Part shown: one piece after another, positions 4,512 through 24,668 of the stretch
Layout: every line of letters begins with the position of its first letter
Position numbering within the stretch: position 1 is the stretch's first letter
From: Prasinococcaceae sp. CCMP 1430
Lineage: Eukaryota > Plantae > Prasinodermophyta
NCBI GenBank assembly: GCA_013416795.1
Contig: RQSC01001236.1
Span: 30,474-55,141, forward strand
Reading direction: 5' to 3'
DNA length: 24,668 nucleotides
Translations under genes and position numbers: made by a program
The notes under the pieces: model-generated
Told to the model about the DNA's origin: nothing
Databases searched by the model: none
What the model saw: the letters and a program-made list of their open reading frames with translations, nothing else

Positions 4512-6987
4512 TCACGCGGCCTGCGCGGCGGCGCCCTGCTGCGGCGGGCGCATGGGCGCGTACGCGCCCATGCAGTGCGCCTGCCATCCGCCGTTGAATC
4601 GCACGCTGCCCGCCTCGTAGTCGTACACCCAACCGTTGTGCTTCGCGTTCGCCTCGCGCGGCTGTGGCTCGCCCGCGGCGGAGGAGGGACAAGGCGCGAA
4701 CACCAGCTGCGCGTCGTTGAGCATCCGCTTGTCGAACTCGCCGTTGTCCGCCAGCGCGATGCACGCCCGGCTGCCGGCGGCCGCCCCCATCCCCGACGGC
4801 ACGGACGCTGATATGGTGCCCTCGTACGCACGCAGCACGACGTCGTCCAAGGCCTGCGGCGAGTCGCACGGCACGAGGCGCATCAGCCGGTCCGATCCAA
4901 CGCCGGCACACAGCGGCGGCGTCGACGAGTCGGGCGCGAGCGTGCTGCGCAGCGTGAGCCGCCCGCCGCTCAGCGTCCACGCGAGCACGCCCGCCGCATG
5001 AAGCAGGTCGTTGCCGCAGGGCTGCGCCGAGAGCGGCGTGCCCGCCGCGGGCGGTGCGGCGCCGCCAGCGGACAGCGCGCCCGCAGAGGGGTCCAGCACG
5101 CCGCGGACGGCGAAGTCCTTGAAGCCCGCGCGCAGGTAGTCGGTTGTGCCGATGGCGCAGAAGCCGTGCGTGGCGATGGCGTTCATGCCAGACTGGGCGG
5201 TGAGGACCTGTGCGCACGTGACGTCAGCACGCGCATGCAGAGTGCAGCCCACCACCGTGCGCGCGCGTGCATGGATTCGTGCTGGCGTGCGTGCATTCGG
5301 CAACCGATCGGCACGCCCGTGTGCGTGCTCGTACGCGTGAACACGCCTAAGCGTGTGAATGTGTGCTATGCGCAGGCGCCCGGTGTGCACAAACAATCTC
5401 AAAAATCGCACACGCGCACGTACCTTGCGCACGCTCGTCCGGCCGGAGAGGTACGCGCTGGCCGTGTCGCCGCTCACCACCAGCGTGAGGCGCACGTCGT
5501 GCGCGTGCTGCGGCGAAAGCGAGGGCACCACACCGCTGGCGACGGTGGCGCTCCGGTCGTGCACGGACTGCAGCGAGGGCTCGAGGCGCCAGTCGCCGCC
5601 CGCCTCGAGCACGAAGTAGATTCCCACGGGGCGCACGCCGTTAAAGGTGCCGCGGCCGTCCACGCGCGCCGCCACGAAGGCCCCGCCGCCGCGGGTGACC
5701 TCGCCGCCCAGCGATACCGTCGCACTCACGCTGACGTCCTGCCACATGGCATCGCCAACCAGACTGAACGGCACGAGGTCCCCAGACCACGTCACCGGAC
5801 GCTCAGGCACGACCTGAACGAGCGCAGTACGGTTGCCCTTAGGGAAATTGGACGCTCCGGGAATGGGATCCCCACCAGCGGAGTCCTCTGCTGGAGCCGA
5901 ATGCCAGTCGTGGCGGACCTCGAAGGTCCCGGCCTGGTCGGCGAAGTATTGCGTCTGGTCGCCGAAGATGCGCCCGACGCCTTCGTCGTTTTCCGGATCG
6001 GCGTCGTCCGAGGCGAAGGCGACGCTCGTGTACGGGAGGGGAAACGGCTTCGCCTCGGGCCGCGTCTCCGGCAGGTCTATGCGCCCCTGTGCGCCCTCGA
6101 AAGAGTCGAGCGGCGCGACGGTGTACACGCAATCCGTTTCGATCTCGAGGAGGATCTCACCCTCGCAGACAGCGACGTCCGGGAGCCGCTCGAACATGTC
6201 CCGCTCGCCGCCGCCGCGTTTCGAGCTCGCGGGGTAATCGAAGCCGAGGCAGGAGCGCCACACGCCCAACGTGGGCTCCGCGCAGCCGTCGCTAGCATCA
6301 GTCGCATGTTCATCCGAGTCCTCGCGGCGGGGCGCACCGCCGACGCCGCGCATGTTGAGACTGTCTGCGTCAAAGACAAACTTGAAGGTGGCAACCTCCG
6401 GTGCGGTGTCGTACCACCCGAGTGACGGGCGCACGCACGACGAGTGGTACGCGCTCATCTTTTCGATGACCATGGCCCAGTTCGCGGCGACGCCGTCACC
6501 GCTCTCAGGCTCGCGCATCGTCACGTACGAGCCGCCATGTGTGAGCTTGCCACTCCCTTGGCCCACGGGCAAATAGATCCAACCGGGGCGCGTGAACTGC
6601 GTCGTGTGCGCCGCCATCCAGATGGGCGACCTCAGGTTATAGCTCCCCGTCCACGGCTGAGCAGCGTCCATCAGACCGCTAGAGAAGAAGGGGAAGCCGG
6701 AGTAGTAGGAACCGATCAGGTTCCATACGATGGTGCAAGTCATGCCCGCGTCCACGAAATTGCGGTTGATGGCGCGCGCCAGACAGCCGCCGCCCTCGAG
6801 ATCTGCGAACGTCGAGTCGTCCTCGGAGGCCCAGAGCGGCACGCCCGCGGCGCGCGCCGCGGTGGGGGAAGTCGCGCCTGGGTAGTGCACCCCAATAGCC
6901 CCCAGGCTCCCCCTGAGCTCGGCGTCCGCACCGACGGCACCGACGAGCTTGTTGGCCGTGGCACCCCACGAGCCGTCGCTGCCGATG
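4512..6987 (-). CDS. GALC: Glycoside hydrolase family 59 (galactocerebrosidase-like) with a C-terminal Cys/Trp ricin-B-like extension; complement(join(4512..5207,5424..<6987)); 5' part lost at N 6988
   Basis: Colinear with GALC as I recall it: IGVHYPG, LWASED (nucleophile Glu), WNLIGSYY, QPWTGSY, AHTTQFTRPGW, GGSYVT, FADQAGTFE, VGDAMW. In-frame intron 5208..5423 (GTACGT..CAG). Confidence 0.88.
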
Positions 6988-7158
6988 NCGCCCGCCGCAA
7001 CGCCGGTGGCGGCAGCGGTGCGAAAGGCAGCACCCGCTGCGGGGGCTCGGGCGGCCGCGGCCGCGGCTGCTGCGGTGCCGAGAAAGAGCGCGGCGCCCGC
7101 CGACGGGGTGTGTGTGGGTACTGTAGGTATTAGGTTTGGGTAGACCAGGCGCTCGCGC

Positions 7159-7768
7159 TCACTCGACGGGCGCGATCTCCCCGAGGTAGATGGCCTTGTC
7201 GGCGCCGGCGCTGGCGATGACGGGCTCGGCGGGGTGGAATGAGACCTCGGCGACGGCACCCTGGTGGCCGGGCAGCTTGTACAGCAGCTCGCGCGCACCG
7301 TAGTCCCACACGTGGACGTGGCGGTCGCCCGAGCCGCACGCCACGCGCGCGCCGTCGGCCGACCACGCGCAGCGCAGCAGGTCCTGCTCGAAGGTGTGCT
7401 TGTGGCCCGTGAGCACCCTGTCCGCGCGCGCGCCGCCCGCGGCGAAGGGCCGCACGTCCCACGAGCGCAGCGTGCCGTCCATGCCATTGGACAGCAGCGT
7501 GTGCCCGTCGGGGGACAGCGCGAGCCCCGTCACCGTGCCGCCGTGGCCCACCAGCGTCTCGACGGGGCCCTCGTCCGTCCGCCGCAGGTCCCACATGCCC
7601 ACGTCATTATCAATCCCGCCCGTGTACACGCCGTCGCCGCCGTCGGCGAAGGCCACCGACGTCATCGAGTAGCCCCCGGTCAGCGTCATCGCCGACGCGC
7701 GCACGCGCAGGTCCCACACGCGGCACGTCCTGTCGTCGGACGCCGTCGCCACCAGCGGCGGCCCTCGC
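7159..7768 (-). CDS. SNRNP40: U5 snRNP 40 kDa WD40 protein, C-terminal exon only (last ~4 WD repeats)
   Basis: RRGPPLVATASDD, VYTGGIDND, LSNGMD, HTFEQDLLRCAWS, LYKLPGHQGAV..V.FHP, DKAIYLGEI. Exon starts after CGCAG acceptor at 7769; no upstream WD exon was found. Confidence 0.85.
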
Positions 7769-12985: not shown

Positions 12986-13551
12986 ATGTCGGGCGCGGTG
13001 TCGCGCTTCGCGCTGGGGCTGCTCACCACGCTCTATCACGTGCGTCGCGCAGAAGCCGCCCCGATGCTGCTGGCTCTGTGTGTGTACACGCGTGTGTACT
13101 TGTGCGTGCGTGCGTGTGCGTGTGCATGTGCGTGTGCATGTGCGCGGTAGTGTCGTTGCGCGCCTCCGTCCGCTCGGTACGCGCGCAATCGCGTCGCGTC
13201 GCGCGCGCGCTCGCTCGCGCGCTGACGCACACGCGCATGCGCGCGCGGGCTCGCGTCCGTACTCGTGGGCGTGTGCGTCTGCGCGCGCGCGTGCGTACGT
13301 GTGTGCGGCTGCAGGCGTGGCTGTTGCACTTTTACTCCGCGCTCGCGCTGCGCGAGTCCGTGCTCCTCTCCAACGGATCGCACATCCGCGCGTGGTGGAT
13401 CCGCCACCACTTCTTCTTCATCGGCCTCTCGCTGGTGATGCTCACCTGCTCGTATGCCAGCGAGCCCTGCCGCGCCTTCATGCAGCGCTTCAACGTGTGG
13501 GCGTGCTTCCAGGGGCTCATAATGCTGCTGCAGAACCGCTACCAGCGGCAG
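12986..13551 (+). CDS. TMEM120: TMEM120/TMPIT family membrane protein, central part; join(12986..13039,13315..13551,...); 3' end cut at N 13616
   Basis: LYHAWLLHFYSALALRESVLLSNGSHIRAWWIRHH and QGLIMLLQNRYQRQ are TMEM120 hallmarks. Donors GTGCGT (13040) and GTGCGC (13552), acceptor CTGCAG (13314). Confidence 0.87.
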
Positions 13552-13616
13552 GTGCGCGCGCGCACGCGCGCGTGCGCGCATGTATGCGTCTCTATGTGCG
13601 CGCGCGTGTGTGCGCN

Positions 13617-13761
13617 CTCAGCCAGACGACTTGTACCAGCAGATGCTCAGCCAGACGACTTGTACCAGCAGATGCTCAGCCAGACGACTTGTACCAGCAG
13701 ATGCTCAGCCAGACGACTTGTACCAGCAGATGCTCAGCCAGACGACTTGTACCAGCAGATG
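13617..13761. repeat. Perfect 29-bp tandem repeat x5 (CTCAGCCAGACGACTTGTACCAGCAGATG), flush with an N
   Basis: Five identical units starting at 13617, 13646, 13675, 13704 and 13733; no spacers. Confidence 0.95.
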
Positions 13762-16238: not shown

Positions 16239-16444
16239 TGCGCCGATGGCGGTGGTACGCCGCGTACTACAGCGCTTCGAGTTCGCGACAAGTCGCACTT
16301 GGCCCGCCTGTGGGCATGCGCGTCCAGGGCGAAGAGGTGAGCATGCGTGTGTATGTGCGGGCCGTGATGTGACGCGATGGCGAGCCTGATGTGACAGTTG
16401 CGTATCTATACTGACTTTTTGATGCGATCGTCGCACCGCACCTC

Positions 16445-16551
16445 GATCCGTTGGTTTAGTTATTTGAAAGGGCTCTGGCCCTTTTTAACTAGAAGGTTAT
16501 AACGTCCGCCTAACAAGCGGAAGGCCGGCAGTTCGACTCTGCCATGGATTA
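16445..16551 (+). tRNA. trnV-AAC: tRNA-Val(AAC) with a 33-nt intron (16462..16494) in the D-loop at position 17/18
   Basis: Acceptor GATCCGT/ATGGATT, D-arm GTTT-AGTT|GGTTA-TAAC after splicing, anticodon arm TCCGC-CTAACAA-GCGGA, variable AGGCC, T-arm GGCAG-TTCGACT-CTGCC, discriminator A73. The intron ends form a BHB motif. Confidence 0.9.
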
Positions 16552-16579
16552 GCAGTTCAAAAGCCGTGTGCGGGCTTCC

Positions 16580-16588
16580 TTTTTTTTT
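16580..16588 (+). terminator. RNA polymerase III terminator (T9)
   Basis: Nine Ts starting 29 nt after the tRNA 3' end. Confidence 0.75.
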
Positions 16589-16685: not shown

Positions 16686-16892
16686 CCTGGTGCAAGAAAA
16701 TAAAACCCAGCACACCCTAATCCGCCGACCTGGTCCCCTAATCCGTCGGCCCTGCAGCGTCCATCGACCCCGGTACCCGCATCCGTCGACCCTGGTGCGG
16801 AAAAAAATTAAAACCCAGCACACCCTAATCCGTCGGCCCTGGTGCCCTAATCCGTCGGCCTTGGTGCGTCCGCCGACCCTGGTGCGCTAATC
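16686..16892. repeat. Degenerate ~22-bp minisatellite (CCCTAATCCGTCGGCCCTGGTG) with higher-order duplication
   Basis: About 7 variant units. TAAAACCCAGCACACCCTAATCCG is repeated exactly at 16701-16724 and 16809-16832. Confidence 0.85.
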
Positions 16893-17137
16893 AGTGGGTA
16901 AATGACTGTCAGAAGTAACCACGGGAGAGCAGATACATAAATGGCTGGACATCAAACGTGACCACGGGAGACTAGATGAGGACAACACTATGTGGCATTA
17001 TCCGATGTAATCCACGTATCATCACACACCACCCTCGACCGAACCTCTAGACTAGTCTGTTCGTAAACATTCGGGGGTTACGTCCGAACTTACCACGAAG
17101 TGAAGATGTAATGAAGATGCAATCCATCTATCATCAT

Positions 17138-17275: not shown

Positions 17276-17341
17276 TTTTTTTCCTTCGGGCGTGTGCCGA
17301 AAACTTGACGATTAGGTACCGTCTCAGCTTGACGGCCGGAA
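17276..17341. repeat. Exact mirror (reversed, not complemented) copy of 16521..16586 (tRNA 3' half, trailer and T-run)
   Basis: Read right to left, the + strand gives AAGGCCGGCAGTTCGACTCTGCCATGGATTAGCAGTTCAAAAGCCGTGTGCGGGCTTCCTTTTTTT, identical to 16521-16586. Confidence 0.97.
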
Positions 17342-17527
17342 CCGCTTGTTAGGCGGACGTTATAACCTTCTAGTTAAAAAGGGCCAGAGCCCTTTCAAAT
17401 AACTAAACCAACGGATCGAGGTGCGGTGCGACGATCGCATCAAAAAGTCAGTATAGATACGCAACTGTCACATCAGGCTCGCCATCGCGTCACATCACGG
17501 CCCGCACATACACACGCATGCTCACCT
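17342..17527 (-). repeat. Exact 186-bp inverted repeat of 16335..16520, carrying the tRNA-Val upstream region and 5' half (through position 42, intron included)
   Basis: Base-by-base reverse-complement identity over 186 nt; arms are 821 nt apart. Confidence 0.97.
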
Positions 17528-17583
17528 GAAGCGGGACCTGCGCGTACGGGTGTCCGCCCGGTTCACGCTGAACAGCGCTTGAG
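17528..17583. repeat. Exact mirror (reversed, not complemented) copy of 16279..16334
   Basis: GAAGCGGGACCTGCGCGTACGGGTGTCCGCCCGGTTCACGCTGAACAGCGCTTGAG equals 16334 to 16279 read backwards. Confidence 0.97.
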
Positions 17584-17628: not shown

Positions 17629-19371
17629 TTGACCTGCCTGCGCTCCGCGTGCGTGCGCGCGCGCGCACGCCACGCGCCCACTGAGGTAACCGGCCCAGCG
17701 GCGTGCGCGCCCTTCCCCCGACCCTTTCCCCGTCCTCCGCTCCTCCCCCCCCCTCCCCACACACCCCTGTGCCCCTCCCCCTCTGCCGCGCCCCTCGCGC
17801 CCGCCGCCGCCGCCGTCGCCCCGACCGCTAGCGGGCGGCGGCGCGCGGCATCCGCGCGCTCCGCCCCGCGCGCGGCGGCCACCGATCCCGCCGATCCCGC
17901 CGATCCCGCCGATCCCGCGGAGTCCTCGAGCAACACCAACACAGCAGCCTTCCAATGGCGCGGCTTCAAGCCCCTCCCCGCCCTCGCCTCCGTTTCAATC
18001 GGCCTCGTCCTCTACCTTCTCATCCCGTGCCCCGCCCAGCTCACCCAGCAGGCGTGGGCCCTGCTGGCCATCTTCCTCACCACGGTCACCGGCCTCATCC
18101 TCGAGCCGCTGCCCGTCCCGGCGTGGGCCGTGCTCTCCCTCACCACCGCGCTGATGACCAAGACGCTCTCGTGGGACGCGGCGATGGGCGCCTTCACCAA
18201 CGACGTCATCTGGCTGATCACCGTGAGCTTCTTCTTCGCGCGCGGCATCGTGCAGTCGGGCCTGGGCGCGCGCATCGCGCAGGCGTTCGTGGCGCTCTTC
18301 GGGCGCTCCACCCTCGGCCTGTCGTACGGCCTGGCGGCCGCCGAAACCGTATTAGCACTTGCGATGCCCTCGGGCACCGCGCGCGCCGGCGGCGTCTTCA
18401 TGCCGGTGATCGACTCGCTCTCCAAAGAATCGGGCTCCACGCCTCACTCCAACCCCCGGCGTATGGGCGCCTTCCTGGCCATGTCGCAGGCGCACGGCGC
18501 GTCGGCGCACTCCTCGTCCATCTTCCTGACGGGCGCCGCGCAGAACCTGCTCGTCATCAAGCTCGCCGAGCAGGCCGGCGTGGTGTTCGCCAACGCGTGG
18601 ATGCAGTGGTTCGCGGCGGGCGTCCTGCCGTGCCTGGCGTGCCTGGCGCTCAGCCCGTACGCCGTGTACCGGCTGTGCGAGCCCGAGCTCAAGGACACCC
18701 CGGAGGCGCCCGCGCGGGCGCGCGCGAGCCTCGCGGCGATGGGGCCGCTCACGCAGGACGAGGCGATCATGGTGGCGGCCATGGGCGCCGCGGTGGTCAT
18801 CTGGGTGGGCGGCTTCGGCCTGCCGGGCGCCGTGGGCGCCCTGCTGGGGCTCAGCGTCCTGCTGGCGACGGGCGTGCTCTCGTGGGCGGACTGCATCGAC
18901 GAGGAGCCCGGGTGGTCGACGCTCACGTGGTTCTCCATCCTGGTGGGCTACTCCACGGCGCTCAACGAGCTGGGCGTCATCGGCTGGGTCGCAAGCAGCT
19001 GCAGCGGCCTCGTGGCGAGCCTCGGCCTGCCCACCGCCGGCGCGGTGGCGCTCATCCTCGCCGCCTACGCGCTCATCCACTACATGTTCGCCAGCCAGAC
19101 GGCGCACGTCGCCTCGCTCTTCGGCGCCTTCCTGAGCATGATGGTGCTCGCGGGCGGCGCCGGCCTGCCGGCCGCGCTCGCGCTGGGCTTCCTGACCAAC
19201 CTCTTCGGCGGCATCACGCACTACGCCGCGGGCCAGAGCGTGGTCTTCTACAACGCCGGCTACGTGAGCCTCGCGGAGTTCTGGACCATCGGCCTCAAGA
19301 TGTTCCTGCTGAACTCGGCCGTCTTCGCGGCCGTCGCCATCCCGTGGTGGAAGTTCCTGGGCATCATGTGA
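17629..19371 (+). CDS. DiT2: Plastid dicarboxylate (glutamate/malate) translocator, DiT2 type, DASS family; true start codon not found (17629 is only the ORF-track start)
   Basis: LAIFLTT..LEPLPVPAWA, AFTNDVIWLI..SFFFARG, STLGLSYGL, AMPSGTARAGG, FLTGAAQNLL..KLAE, KDTPEAP, HYMFASQTAHV, HYAAGQS, WWKFLG. Preceded by an Ala/Arg/Ser transit-like segment and a (DPA)4 repeat. Confidence 0.94.
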   Translation: MTCLRSACVRARARHAPTEVTGPAACAPFPRPFPRPPLLPPPPHTPLCPSPSAAPLAPAAAAVAPTASGRRRAASARSAPRAAATDPADPADPADPAESSSNTNTAAFQWRGFKPLPALASVSIGLVLYLLIPCPAQLTQQAWALLAIFLTTVTGLILEPLPVPAWAVLSLTTALMTKTLSWDAAMGAFTNDVIWLITVSFFFARGIVQSGLGARIAQAFVALFGRSTLGLSYGLAAAETVLALAMPSGTARAGGVFMPVIDSLSKESGSTPHSNPRRMGAFLAMSQAHGASAHSSSIFLTGAAQNLLVIKLAEQAGVVFANAWMQWFAAGVLPCLACLALSPYAVYRLCEPELKDTPEAPARARASLAAMGPLTQDEAIMVAAMGAAVVIWVGGFGLPGAVGALLGLSVLLATGVLSWADCIDEEPGWSTLTWFSILVGYSTALNELGVIGWVASSCSGLVASLGLPTAGAVALILAAYALIHYMFASQTAHVASLFGAFLSMMVLAGGAGLPAALALGFLTNLFGGITHYAAGQSVVFYNAGYVSLAEFWTIGLKMFLLNSAVFAAVAIPWWKFLGIM

Positions 19372-22051: not shown

Positions 22052-23555
22052 ATGGCGGACGCGGAGGGCGGCGCGACCGCAGGAGCGCCGCCGGCCGCCN
22101 NNNNNNNNNNNNNNNNNNNNNNNNNNNNNNNNNNNNNNNNNNNNNNNNNNNNNNNNNNNNNNNNNNNNNNNNNNNNNNNNNNNNNNNNNNNNNNNNNNNN
22201 NNNNNNNNNNNNNNNNNNNNNNNNNNNNNNNNNGGCGGCGACCGTCGTGCTGCACGTGTGCCGCGCGCTCCGCGAGCGCCGACAAGCGGCCCCAGCGACG
22301 CCGGCGAGCCTCGTGGCCGAGGCGCGCGCGGCGGGCGTCGACGACGCGAGGCGCTCGGCGCTGACGGCGCACGCCAGCGAGCGAGAGGGCGACGCTCCGC
22401 GCCGGCCGGCCTTGCTCCTCCTGCACGACGTCGGCGAGTCGATGGAGTCCGTGCTGGGCGCCGCCGAGCGCGCCGCCGAGCGCGGGTACGTCGCCGCCGC
22501 CATGGAGCTGCGCAACCACGGCGCACGCGCGGCGATGCGGCCGCACGCCTACCGCGAGGCGCTCTGCGCCGCCTATCGCGACTACGACGCCCGTGCAGTC
22601 GAGCCGGCGCCTCCCGCGTACGCGCTGGACTCGCTCTGGGACGCCTCGCGCGTGCTCGACTACCTGTGCGCGCGGCCGGACGTCGACGCCGCGCGCGTGG
22701 GCGTGCTGGGGTTCGGGCTGGGCGGCGCGGTGGCGTACATGCTCGCCGCGCTGGACGCGCGCGTGGCGTGCTGCGTGCCCGTGTGCGGCGTGCGCGCGTA
22801 CAAGCGGGCGCTCAGCTCGGGCGAGTGGCGCAACGAGGCCGACGAGATGCCGCACGTGTTCGCGCTCGCGGCGAAGCTCAGGGAGGGGCGTCACGCGGAG
22901 GGCGCCGGCGGAGGACCAGGTGAGAGCGCAGCCGGAGCGGTGGCGGCGCGCCCGCTTGCGCGCGCGCGCGCCCGCGGCGCAGTGTCTGACCCCCCGCGCG
23001 CAAGCAGCGTCCAACAAGTCGGCCGCCGTGGCGGCGTCCTCGGGCGGCCGCCTTGGTCCGACCCTCGCGGGAGTCACTGCAGGCGACGCCAAGGAAGTGT
23101 GGCAGCGCGTGGCGCCGGGGCTGCTGGAGCACTTCGACGCCCCCGAGTGCCTGCATGCGATCGCGCCGCGGCCGCTGCTGGTGATCGCCGGCCAGCGCGA
23201 CGGCGTGTGCCCCGTCGGCGGCGTCCAGGAGGCGTACGCCACTGCGATGCGCGCGTGGGCGGTCCTGGGCGCGGCGCCGCACGTGCGCTTGCAGGTCTTC
23301 GAGGGCGTGGGGCACAGGCCCAACGAGGCGATGCGGCGCGCAGCCAATGCGTGGCTCGACAAGTTCCTGCTGCACGGCGGCAGGGAGCAGAAGGCCCTCC
23401 CCGACATCATCTATGCCGGCGGCCCGCCGCCGCAGCCGGAGGGTGCCGAGGCCGAGCAGGCGAGCCAGCGGCGGACGGGGACGGAGGAGGCGGCGCCCGG
23501 AACGACATGCTCGGCGCGCCCCCCCGTTCGCCGGGGCAGGAGCGCAATCGCGTAG
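22052..23555 (+). CDS. Alpha/beta-hydrolase fold protein (dienelactone hydrolase/esterase-like) lacking the nucleophile Ser; join(22052..22919,23008..23555), spanning an N gap
   Basis: RGYVAAAMELRNHG, VLDYL..RPDVDAARVGVLGFGLGG, AIAPRPLLVIAGQRD, FEGVGH. Intron GTGAGA(22920)..AAGCAG(23007) is a NAGNAG acceptor. Confidence 0.87.
22100..22233. other. Assembly gap (134 N)
   Basis: Run of N. Confidence 1.
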
Positions 23556-23693: not shown

Positions 23694-24461
23694 CTAGTCT
23701 TGGCGGCCCTTGAGCACACGCGTGGTGATCTTGTCCTGCTCCACGATGTGCACAATACCGCCCCAGCCGCTCAGGCAGTCACGGTCCACCGAGCTCAGCA
23801 GCACCTGCGAGATTGTCTCGAAGAGGTCCTCGGGCTCGAGGTCCGGCCTGTACATCGACTCGCACGTGCCGTACAAGTTCTCGCTCGCCGTTCCGCCCAC
23901 CGCGAAATCGGCCGCCAGCTGCTGCGCTCCGAGCAAGTCCATCGCGCACAGGTACGGCTCGCCCTGCGCGTCCAGCCCGGCAATGATCGGCTCCGCGAAG
24001 TACGGCCCGAAGCGCTTCTCGTACAGCATGGAGCTCACCATGTTGGCGAAGACCTTCGGGCTCATGTCGCGCTCCTCCCGCAGCTTGTACATGTTCTGGC
24101 GGAAGGCGAAGCGCTGCGACCTGCGGTGAGCGAGCGCGGGGGAGGCAGTCAGCTCGCCGAGGCGCCCACGCGCAAGGGCGCGAGGGCGCAGTGCGCGGCG
24201 CGCGCGTCCTCGGCGACGCGCGCCAGGCGCCACAACCCGTGGGCGCGCGTGCAGGATCTGCGCGCAGCGATCTTCGTGCGCGCGCGGCGGACGCACAGTG
24301 TGAGCACGTCCGTGGCGAGCCCCGGCAGGCCGATGAATAGCCGGTCGTGGATCTTGAAGACCTTGTCGAAGTCCGTCGCAATCGTCTGCTGCTCCGCGCC
24401 CAGCCGCCTGTCCGCCGCGATCGCGACGCAGTTCTTGCCGCTCATCGCGACGATGGCAGCG
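23694..24461 (-). CDS. PBC1: 20S proteasome subunit beta-3; complement(join(23694..24120,24297..24461,...)); first exon lies beyond the window
   Basis: [59 protein letters not shown]. Phase-2 introns GTGCGT(24296)..CGCAG(24121) and an acceptor at 24462. Confidence 0.97.
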
Positions 24462-24503
24462 CTGCGATTGAGGGGGGGCGCGCCGCGCGGGGGAGAACGG
24501 GAG

Positions 24504-24507
24504 GTGT

Positions 24508-24545
<38 letters not shown>
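24504..24545. repeat. (GT)n microsatellite in the proteasome beta-3 intron
   Basis: About 21 GT units with one interruption. Confidence 0.9.
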
Positions 24546-24546
<1 letters not shown>

Positions 24547-24668
24547 GGGGGGGTAGCGGGGACGAAGGCGTGCGTGCGTTTGTGCGTGTGCACGCGCCCA
24601 CGCGTCTGCGTCAGCATGCGCGGCCTGCGCGCGGCCGCGCGCGCGCCTCCACGCGCCGCGGCGCCGCG

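Follow-up and report, generated by a model that had tools for sequence, protein, structure and literature searches.

The nuclear genome of Prasinococcaceae sp. CCMP 1430, a member of the Prasinodermophyta, probably carries two identical, convergent genes for tRNA-Val(AAC), each with a predicted 33-nt intron of the protein-spliced kind in its D-loop, where it parts tRNA position 17 from position 18. The tRNA-Val(AAC) gene with its D-loop insert is a real gene and likely a functional one; the splicing of its intron is a prediction. Genes of this kind are known from red algae, since ectopic introns with a bulge-helix-bulge (BHB) signal occur in Cyanidioschyzon and Chondrus; the present lineage is one for which we found no report. 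The DNA analysed, called the window below, is a stretch of 24,668 nucleotides of contig RQSC01001236.1 (assembly GCA_013416795.1), and its features are collected in Table 1.

Table 1. Features of the tRNA-Val(AAC) locus and its surroundings (window coordinates).
Feature	Position	Strand	Description
Glycosyl hydrolase ORF, GH59 (galactocerebrosidase-like)	4512-7487	-	C-terminal lectin domain
Inverted-repeat arm 1	16280-16586 (307 nt)		promoter region, gene and trailer; short-read contigs with 0 differences
TATA-like TATCTATA	16403-16410	+	35-42 nt upstream of tRNA position 1; candidate Pol III promoter element
Exon 1 (tRNA positions 1-17)	16445-16461 (17 nt)	+	acceptor 5' strand, U8, D-stem 5' strand, start of D-loop (AGTT)
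Outer helix h	16452-55 with 16496-99	+	one A-U and three G-U pairs
Central helix H, TTAG/CTAG	16456-59 with 16489-92	+	three Watson-Crick pairs, one G-U
5' bulge, TT/A	16460-62	+	predicted cut 16461/16462, after second bulge base
Insert between tRNA positions 17 and 18	16462-16494 (33 nt)	+	hairpin plus CTAG (3' strand of central helix)
Inner helix h'	16463-73 with 16478-88	+	10 of 11 positions paired; loop TCTG
Hairpin core of intron (8 bp)	16466-73 with 16478-85	+	loop TCTG
3' bulge, AA/G	16493-95	+	predicted cut 16494/16495, after second bulge base
Exon 2 (tRNA positions 18-73)	16495-16551 (57 nt)	+	D-loop GGTTA, D-stem 3' strand, anticodon arm with AAC, variable loop AGGCC, T arm with GTTCGACTC, acceptor 3' strand, discriminator A at 16551
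T9 run	16580-16588	+	29 nt past discriminator; putative Pol III terminator
Second gene copy	17311-17417	-	exon 1 17401-17417, intron 17368-17400, exon 2 17311-17367
Inverted-repeat arm 2	17276-17582		reverse complement of arm 1 in the window over 17342-17527 only
DiT2-type plastid dicarboxylate (2-oxoglutarate/malate) transporter gene	17629-19371 (conserved 18001-19368)	+	downstream of tRNA gene
Proteasome-subunit gene fragment	23694-24617	-

An initial annotation of the locus had proposed that removal of 16462-16494 leaves a valine tRNA, with the intron at 17/18. Its letters and coordinates across 16445-16551 agree with the sequence as read, and when the two exons (16445-16461 and 16495-16551) are joined in silico, ARAGORN calls the product as a 74-nt tRNA-Val(aac), in accord with the proposal. 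The acceptor stem of the joined tRNA is paired at seven of seven positions, by five Watson-Crick and two G-U pairs (G1-U72 and G6-U67). The D stem is paired at three of four positions, 13:22 being a U-U mismatch. After excision the D-loop is AGUUGGUUA, 9 nt long, with G18-G19 restored. The anticodon arm has a 5-bp stem and the loop CUAACAA (CTAACAA in DNA); the T arm has a 5-bp stem with UUCGACU; and the discriminator is A. Exon 1 contributes U8, A14 and R15, and every invariant position tested is intact. The combination of anticodon AAC and discriminator A73 is the eukaryotic nuclear valine type, and the gene displays four features of a eukaryotic nuclear tRNA-Val(AAC): the anticodon, A73, a B box, and a downstream T-run. 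The intron site, in the D-loop, lies outside the 37/38 position.

The standard searches applied here miss this gene, as the initial annotation had anticipated. ARAGORN called no tRNA in the whole unspliced window, and none at the unspliced locus when run with the intron option, which is confined to the anticodon loop; an Rfam scan of the window at gathering thresholds likewise returned no match. Under relaxed settings the Rfam tRNA model (RF00005) recovers just the exon 2 part (16495-16543, model positions 9-63), scoring 25.6 bits on unspliced DNA, below the gathering score of 29, with a local E of 0.0032. The relaxed scan of the whole window gave no further tRNA fragment.

Two properties of the locus were compared with chance. 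The first is the 5' exon. Lenient ARAGORN also called a full-length tRNA for 615 of the 48,798 window 17-mers (1.3%) when these were joined to the real exon 2, so an ARAGORN call taken by itself is weak evidence for exon 1. A strict test therefore demanded seven of seven acceptor pairs (at least five of them Watson-Crick), U8, A14, R15, and at least three D-stem pairs; only 2 of the 48,798 17-mers pass, namely exon 1 and its inverted copy. The second property is the junction. A register-exact 4-bp central helix together with an inner helix of at least 2 bp is found for 0.7% of shuffled introns, and for 0.24% of window 33-mers put in as the intron. Chance resemblance is excluded for the tRNA feature.

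The inverted repeat and the second copy

A repeat search of the window revealed a perfect inverted repeat of 186 nt (16335-16520 with 17342-17527, 100% complementary), and with it a second, inverted gene copy about 0.8 kb downstream of the first, which the initial annotation had overlooked. Within the window, the intron sequence is present only in these two copies. As the record stands, copy 2 is broken: its last 31 nt (17311-17341) are complemented, with loss of the T loop and of acceptor pairing. This segment belongs to one of two unusual blocks. Compared with the reverse complement of 16280-16586, positions 17276-17341 (66 nt) and 17528-17582 (55 nt) are complementary at every base, unreversed, and the centre between them is identical. 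The two blocks are the only mirror-type matches within the window. We know of no replication or recombination event that yields complement without reversal.

An independent check comes from the Logan contigs of two public DNA runs (X1 and X18) of the same organism. The X1 contig of 307 nt spans 16280-16586 with 0 differences, at a depth of 218 (compared with 73-131 in its neighbours), which corresponds to about two copies; the X18 contig spans 15950-16586, also with 0 differences. The contig over 16806-17275 carries exactly 30 extra letters that do not match the window, and the contig that starts at 17583 carries 30 nonmatching letters on the other side. No other short-read contig lies on 17276-17582. 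Overhangs of 30 letters are the overlap expected for 31-letter words, so the real DNA is most probably a perfect 307-nt inverted repeat. It follows that the genome probably holds two complete genes, identical and convergent, with 689 bp between them; that copy 2 is probably intact in the real DNA; and that the complemented blocks are probably an artefact of assembly or polishing, with the breakage of copy 2 an error of the record and not biology. The public assembly holds complemented but unreversed blocks that break real genes on paper. Because the two copies are identical, they are uninformative about selection.

The inverted repeat with its 689-bp spacer could be a foldback-type element that carries a tRNA gene. 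No target-site duplication is evident around the repeat. Between the tRNA copies, 16694-16895 consists of tandem and dispersed repeats with units of ~21-22 nt (TAATCCGTCGGCCCTGGTGC-like, preceded by AAAACCCAGCACACCCTAATCCG); read depth in the public runs rises about tenfold at 16805-16861, which indicates that the repeat unit is multi-copy in the genome.

Expression and function

The A box (positions 8-19) is not contiguous: the 33-nt insert parts TGGTTTAGTT from GG. The B box (GTTCGACTC in the T arm) is intact. Two T5 runs accompany the gene, one upstream of it (16416-20) and one inside the intron (16482-86). Transcription must begin downstream of the former. The latter is a possible, perhaps partial, Pol III terminator, and speaks against efficient expression. 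The split A box, the intronic run and the TATA-like element at 16403-16410 had been pointed out before, and all are present. In the trailer (16552-16588) a small hairpin (AAGCC...GGCTT) immediately precedes the T9 run, an arrangement reminiscent of a bacterial intrinsic terminator; the trailer lies within both repeat arms.

Split A boxes also occur in genes of Cyanidioschyzon merolae, which are expressed nonetheless (PMC3728597), and upstream TATA-dependent, TFIIIC-independent transcription has been proposed for that alga (PMC3978253). The tRNA genes of C. merolae and of plants (PMC3978253) offer an analogy by which TATCTATA at 16403-16410 is a candidate Pol III promoter element upstream of the gene. 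As part of the inverted repeat, it is common to both gene copies. Because the A box is split, this element and the intact B box probably direct transcription together. RNA polymerase III would start just downstream of the T5 run at 16416-20 and stop at the T9 run.

The product would be needed. Among valine codons in the confident coding stretches of the window, GTG occurs 67 times, GTC 38, GTT 7, and GTA 5. In eukaryotes GUC is read by the anticodon IAC; a Val(IAC) tRNA is therefore needed for GTC, GTT and GTA, which together make up 50 of the 117 codons (about 43%). Editing of A34 to I would let the present tRNA read GUC, GUU and GUA. If so, standard annotation of the tRNA genes in this genome lacks an essential decoder, the Val(IAC) tRNA that serves about 43% of the valine codons in the window's genes.

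Another gene might supply this tRNA. The locus would then be a dead, duplicated pseudogene, in which a 33-nt hairpin-forming insertion entered the D-loop and an inverted duplication followed. We regard this as unlikely, although several observations lean towards it: the acceptor stem is weak, with two G-U pairs, and U13-U22 is a mismatch; the insert brings a T5 run and splits the A box; the two public runs guessed to be RNA-like (X19 and X20) have no contig on 15950-17640; and the intergenic setting is rich in repeats, beside a multi-copy tandem repeat. However, nothing about an inactivating insertion would call for a register-exact BHB that restores G18-G19 and a 9-nt D-loop, a configuration reached by chance in 0.24-0.7% of cases, and the tested invariant positions are all intact. 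Read continuity also bears on the supplying gene. In X1 a single contig passes through all 57 nt of exon 2 without a break, at about twofold depth, which argues, indirectly, against any other locus that shares at least 31 nt of exon 2, such as an identical intronless twin. This argument from contig structure applies to a Val(AAC) gene with an identical exon 2, and not to a divergent isodecoder.

The predicted splice signal

The junctions can be drawn as a BHB: a 4-bp helix lies between two 3-nt bulges, and both predicted cuts fall after the second bulge base. This geometry is canonical: the standard archaeal signal has the first two bases of the anticodon within its 4-bp helix, and positions 36 and 37 with the first intron base form the bulge (PMC4090602). 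The BHB as drawn has an energy of -5.4 kcal/mol (RNAeval), inside the range of C. merolae BHB motifs that are processed in vivo, -11.1 to +1.15 kcal/mol (PMC3728597).

The drawn structure does not come out as the ground state in prediction. At minimum energy (-16.4 kcal/mol, 11 kcal/mol more stable) the locus is predicted to adopt a slipped variant, in which the 5' bulge TTA pairs with TAA at 16486-88 and the bulge shifts to TTT at 16463-65. Pair probabilities are high for the central helix H (0.87-0.96), the hairpin core (0.94-0.99) and the slipped pairs (0.92-0.96); they are about 0.001 for the two h' pairs beside the 5' bulge, and about 0 for the outer helix h. The endonuclease would thus need to select or induce the bulged form. 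The initial annotation had described the central helix, the bulges, the boundaries and a weak outer helix with G-U pairs, and these are present; as a BHB, however, the junction falls short of textbook form, since the slipped fold is favoured. The hairpin with TCTG loop that it gave for the intron body is present in the sequence, and corresponds to the core of high pair probability.

In the fold of the whole precursor, the acceptor, anticodon and T arms are intact, and the D region forms one long hairpin with the intron. This precursor is more stable than 200 of 200 shuffles (z = -3.3). A path to the mature tRNA can be proposed. The three arms would form first in the precursor, next to the long hairpin of D region and intron. 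The tRNA splicing endonuclease would then recognise the BHB locally, with no need of a mature-domain ruler, and cut at 16461/16462 and 16494/16495; eukaryotic splicing endonucleases are able to cut BHB substrates (PMC4090602). Ligation of AGUU to GGUUA by a tRNA ligase would then allow the D stem and the elbow contacts of G18-G19 to form. Genes for Sen2, Sen34 and Sen54 are absent from the window.

The insert might instead be removed at other junctions, or through something less strict than a BHB, such as the slipped fold or a relaxed one-bulge motif, to leave a different D-loop. The slipped fold, with its 3-nt bulge at 16463-65, does dominate the predicted ensemble, and relaxed motifs (hBH and HBh') are in use both in archaea and in C. 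merolae (PMC4090602, PMC3728597). Against this, a cut at the slipped bulge would, as judged from the letters, give a D-loop of about 15 nt that lacks a proper setting for G18-G19, and neither splice boundary can slide, because the neighbouring letters differ. The predicted cuts at 16461/16462 and 16494/16495 are the only ones that would restore A14, G18-G19, and a normal 9-nt D-loop. We therefore consider other junctions quite improbable.

Less probable still is that the mature RNA retains the 33 nt, which would then stand as an additional arm in the variable region of its D-loop. The unspliced RNA does fold with intact acceptor, anticodon and T arms, and with the insert as a self-contained hairpin. 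However, the D stem is unformed and G18-G19 are displaced in that fold, and the register of the BHB would be left as an unexplained coincidence. We know of no tRNA with a 33-nt arm in its D-loop. Finally, the complemented, unreversed blocks of the assembly, one of them inside copy 2, invite the suspicion that chance resemblance or an assembly error has produced a gene that the organism does not have, an explanation rejected for copy 1 by the letter-for-letter contigs from two other read sets and by the statistical tests, and to which we give next to no weight.

Known systems and genomic neighbourhood

A close parallel to this tRNA-Val(AAC) gene is found in Cyanidioschyzon merolae. This red alga has 42 ectopic introns, of 11-69 nt, in 27 nuclear tRNA genes; 14 of the 42 lie in the D-loop, the commonest ectopic class (PMC3728597). 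Soma et al. (2013, PMC3728597) demonstrated their splicing with Northern blots and RT-PCR. Shared with C. merolae are a short D-loop intron in a nuclear tRNA gene, a junction that can be drawn as hBHBh', an interrupted A box, and a TATA-like element upstream. The differences are that the present gene belongs to the Prasinodermophyta, within the green plants; that its splicing is predicted; and that its BHB competes with a far more stable slipped fold.

In Chondrus crispus, RT-PCR has validated introns of nuclear tRNA genes in the D-loop (20/21) and in the T-loop (58/59) (Cognat et al. 2022, PlantRNA 2.0; bioRxiv 10.1101/2021.12.21.473619). There, as here, a D-loop intron interrupts an essential tRNA gene, which tools of the tRNAscan type miss or call a pseudogene; the site in our gene is 17/18 in place of 20/21, and splicing is predicted. 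Ectopic BHB introns are also established for the Guillardia nucleomorph.

The signal itself resembles that of non-canonical crenarchaeal introns, in which a transplantable element of 4 bp and two 3-nt bulges lies outside the anticodon loop and is cut after the second bulge base (PMC4090602). Unlike the archaeal introns, this one sits in a eukaryotic nuclear gene, as the anticodon AAC, the Pol III-type T-run and the eukaryotic neighbours indicate, and the enzyme would be a complex of the Sen2/Sen34 type and not EndA.

Within the green lineage, the prasinophytes Ostreococcus and Micromonas have permuted tRNA genes, mostly at 37/38, and a single ectopic intron, according to the summary of Maruyama et al. 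2010 given in a later review (PMC3978253). These picoalgae share with the present one a tRNA gene rearrangement that depends on the BHB, but their genes are circularly permuted, whereas ours is collinear with a D-loop intron. Reviews credit green algae with permuted tRNA genes and "almost no" ectopic introns, and, up to August 2026, treat eukaryotic tRNA introns outside 37/38 as rare exceptions of red algae and nucleomorphs (PMC3978253, PMC13578239). The August 2026 review of photosynthetic tRNA repertoires makes no mention of Prasinoderma (PMC13578239), the Prasinoderma coloniale genome paper does not discuss nuclear tRNA genes (PMC7455551), and our literature search found no report of D-loop BHB tRNA introns in Prasinodermophyta or other green plants.

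As a single case, the gene is ordinary by red-algal standards; the lineage and a genome-wide pattern are what would matter. If the gene works as proposed, D-loop BHB introns extend to the green plants, in a lineage that split off before Chlorophyta and Streptophyta diverged, and the gene bears on whether BHB-only recognition by a eukaryotic endonuclease is ancestral. One may go further and suppose, tentatively and at somewhat less than an even chance, that in Prasinoderma, which represents the third phylum of green plants, the endonuclease processes many essential tRNA genes across the genome by a BHB recognition that is archaeal-like and independent of position. Were that so, "highly disrupted" nuclear tRNA genes would be no peculiarity of red algae, and would either go back to the ancestor of Archaeplastida or have arisen repeatedly in small, GC-rich genomes of algae.

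The tRNA gene lies in a 1.9-kb intergenic stretch, where the G+C content, 70% for the window, dips to 61%. The window value agrees with the 69.8% published for Prasinoderma coloniale (PMC7455551). The best named relatives of the DiT2-like transporter encoded downstream, at about 52-54% identity, come from land plants, Chlorokybus and Trebouxia. Its best relatives overall are unnamed proteins from the Tara Oceans metagenomes (73-74% identity); the relatives carry Pfam Na_sulph_symp. The Tara Oceans relatives lie on compact contigs, with a gene for tripeptidyl-peptidase II adjacent, and suggest that an uncultured relative of the alga is widespread in the ocean. These contigs (L001-L008) contain no tRNA and no partial tRNA match around the transporter gene. 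A metagenome scan gave 0 matches for an exact 23-mer of exon 2, and again 0 for an exon-2 30-mer with free letters in the anticodon stem.

Elsewhere in the window, 13078-13624 is GT/GC-rich and of low complexity, with chance-level Rfam matches to mir-297, mir-3149 and a snoRNA, far below gathering scores. A single N stands at each of 3182, 6988, 9048, 11804, 13616 and 21529, and a run of N at 22100-22233. The GH59-like and proteasome genes are ordinary eukaryotic neighbours that probably contain spliceosomal introns, since their domains lack the N-terminal parts in the ORFs.
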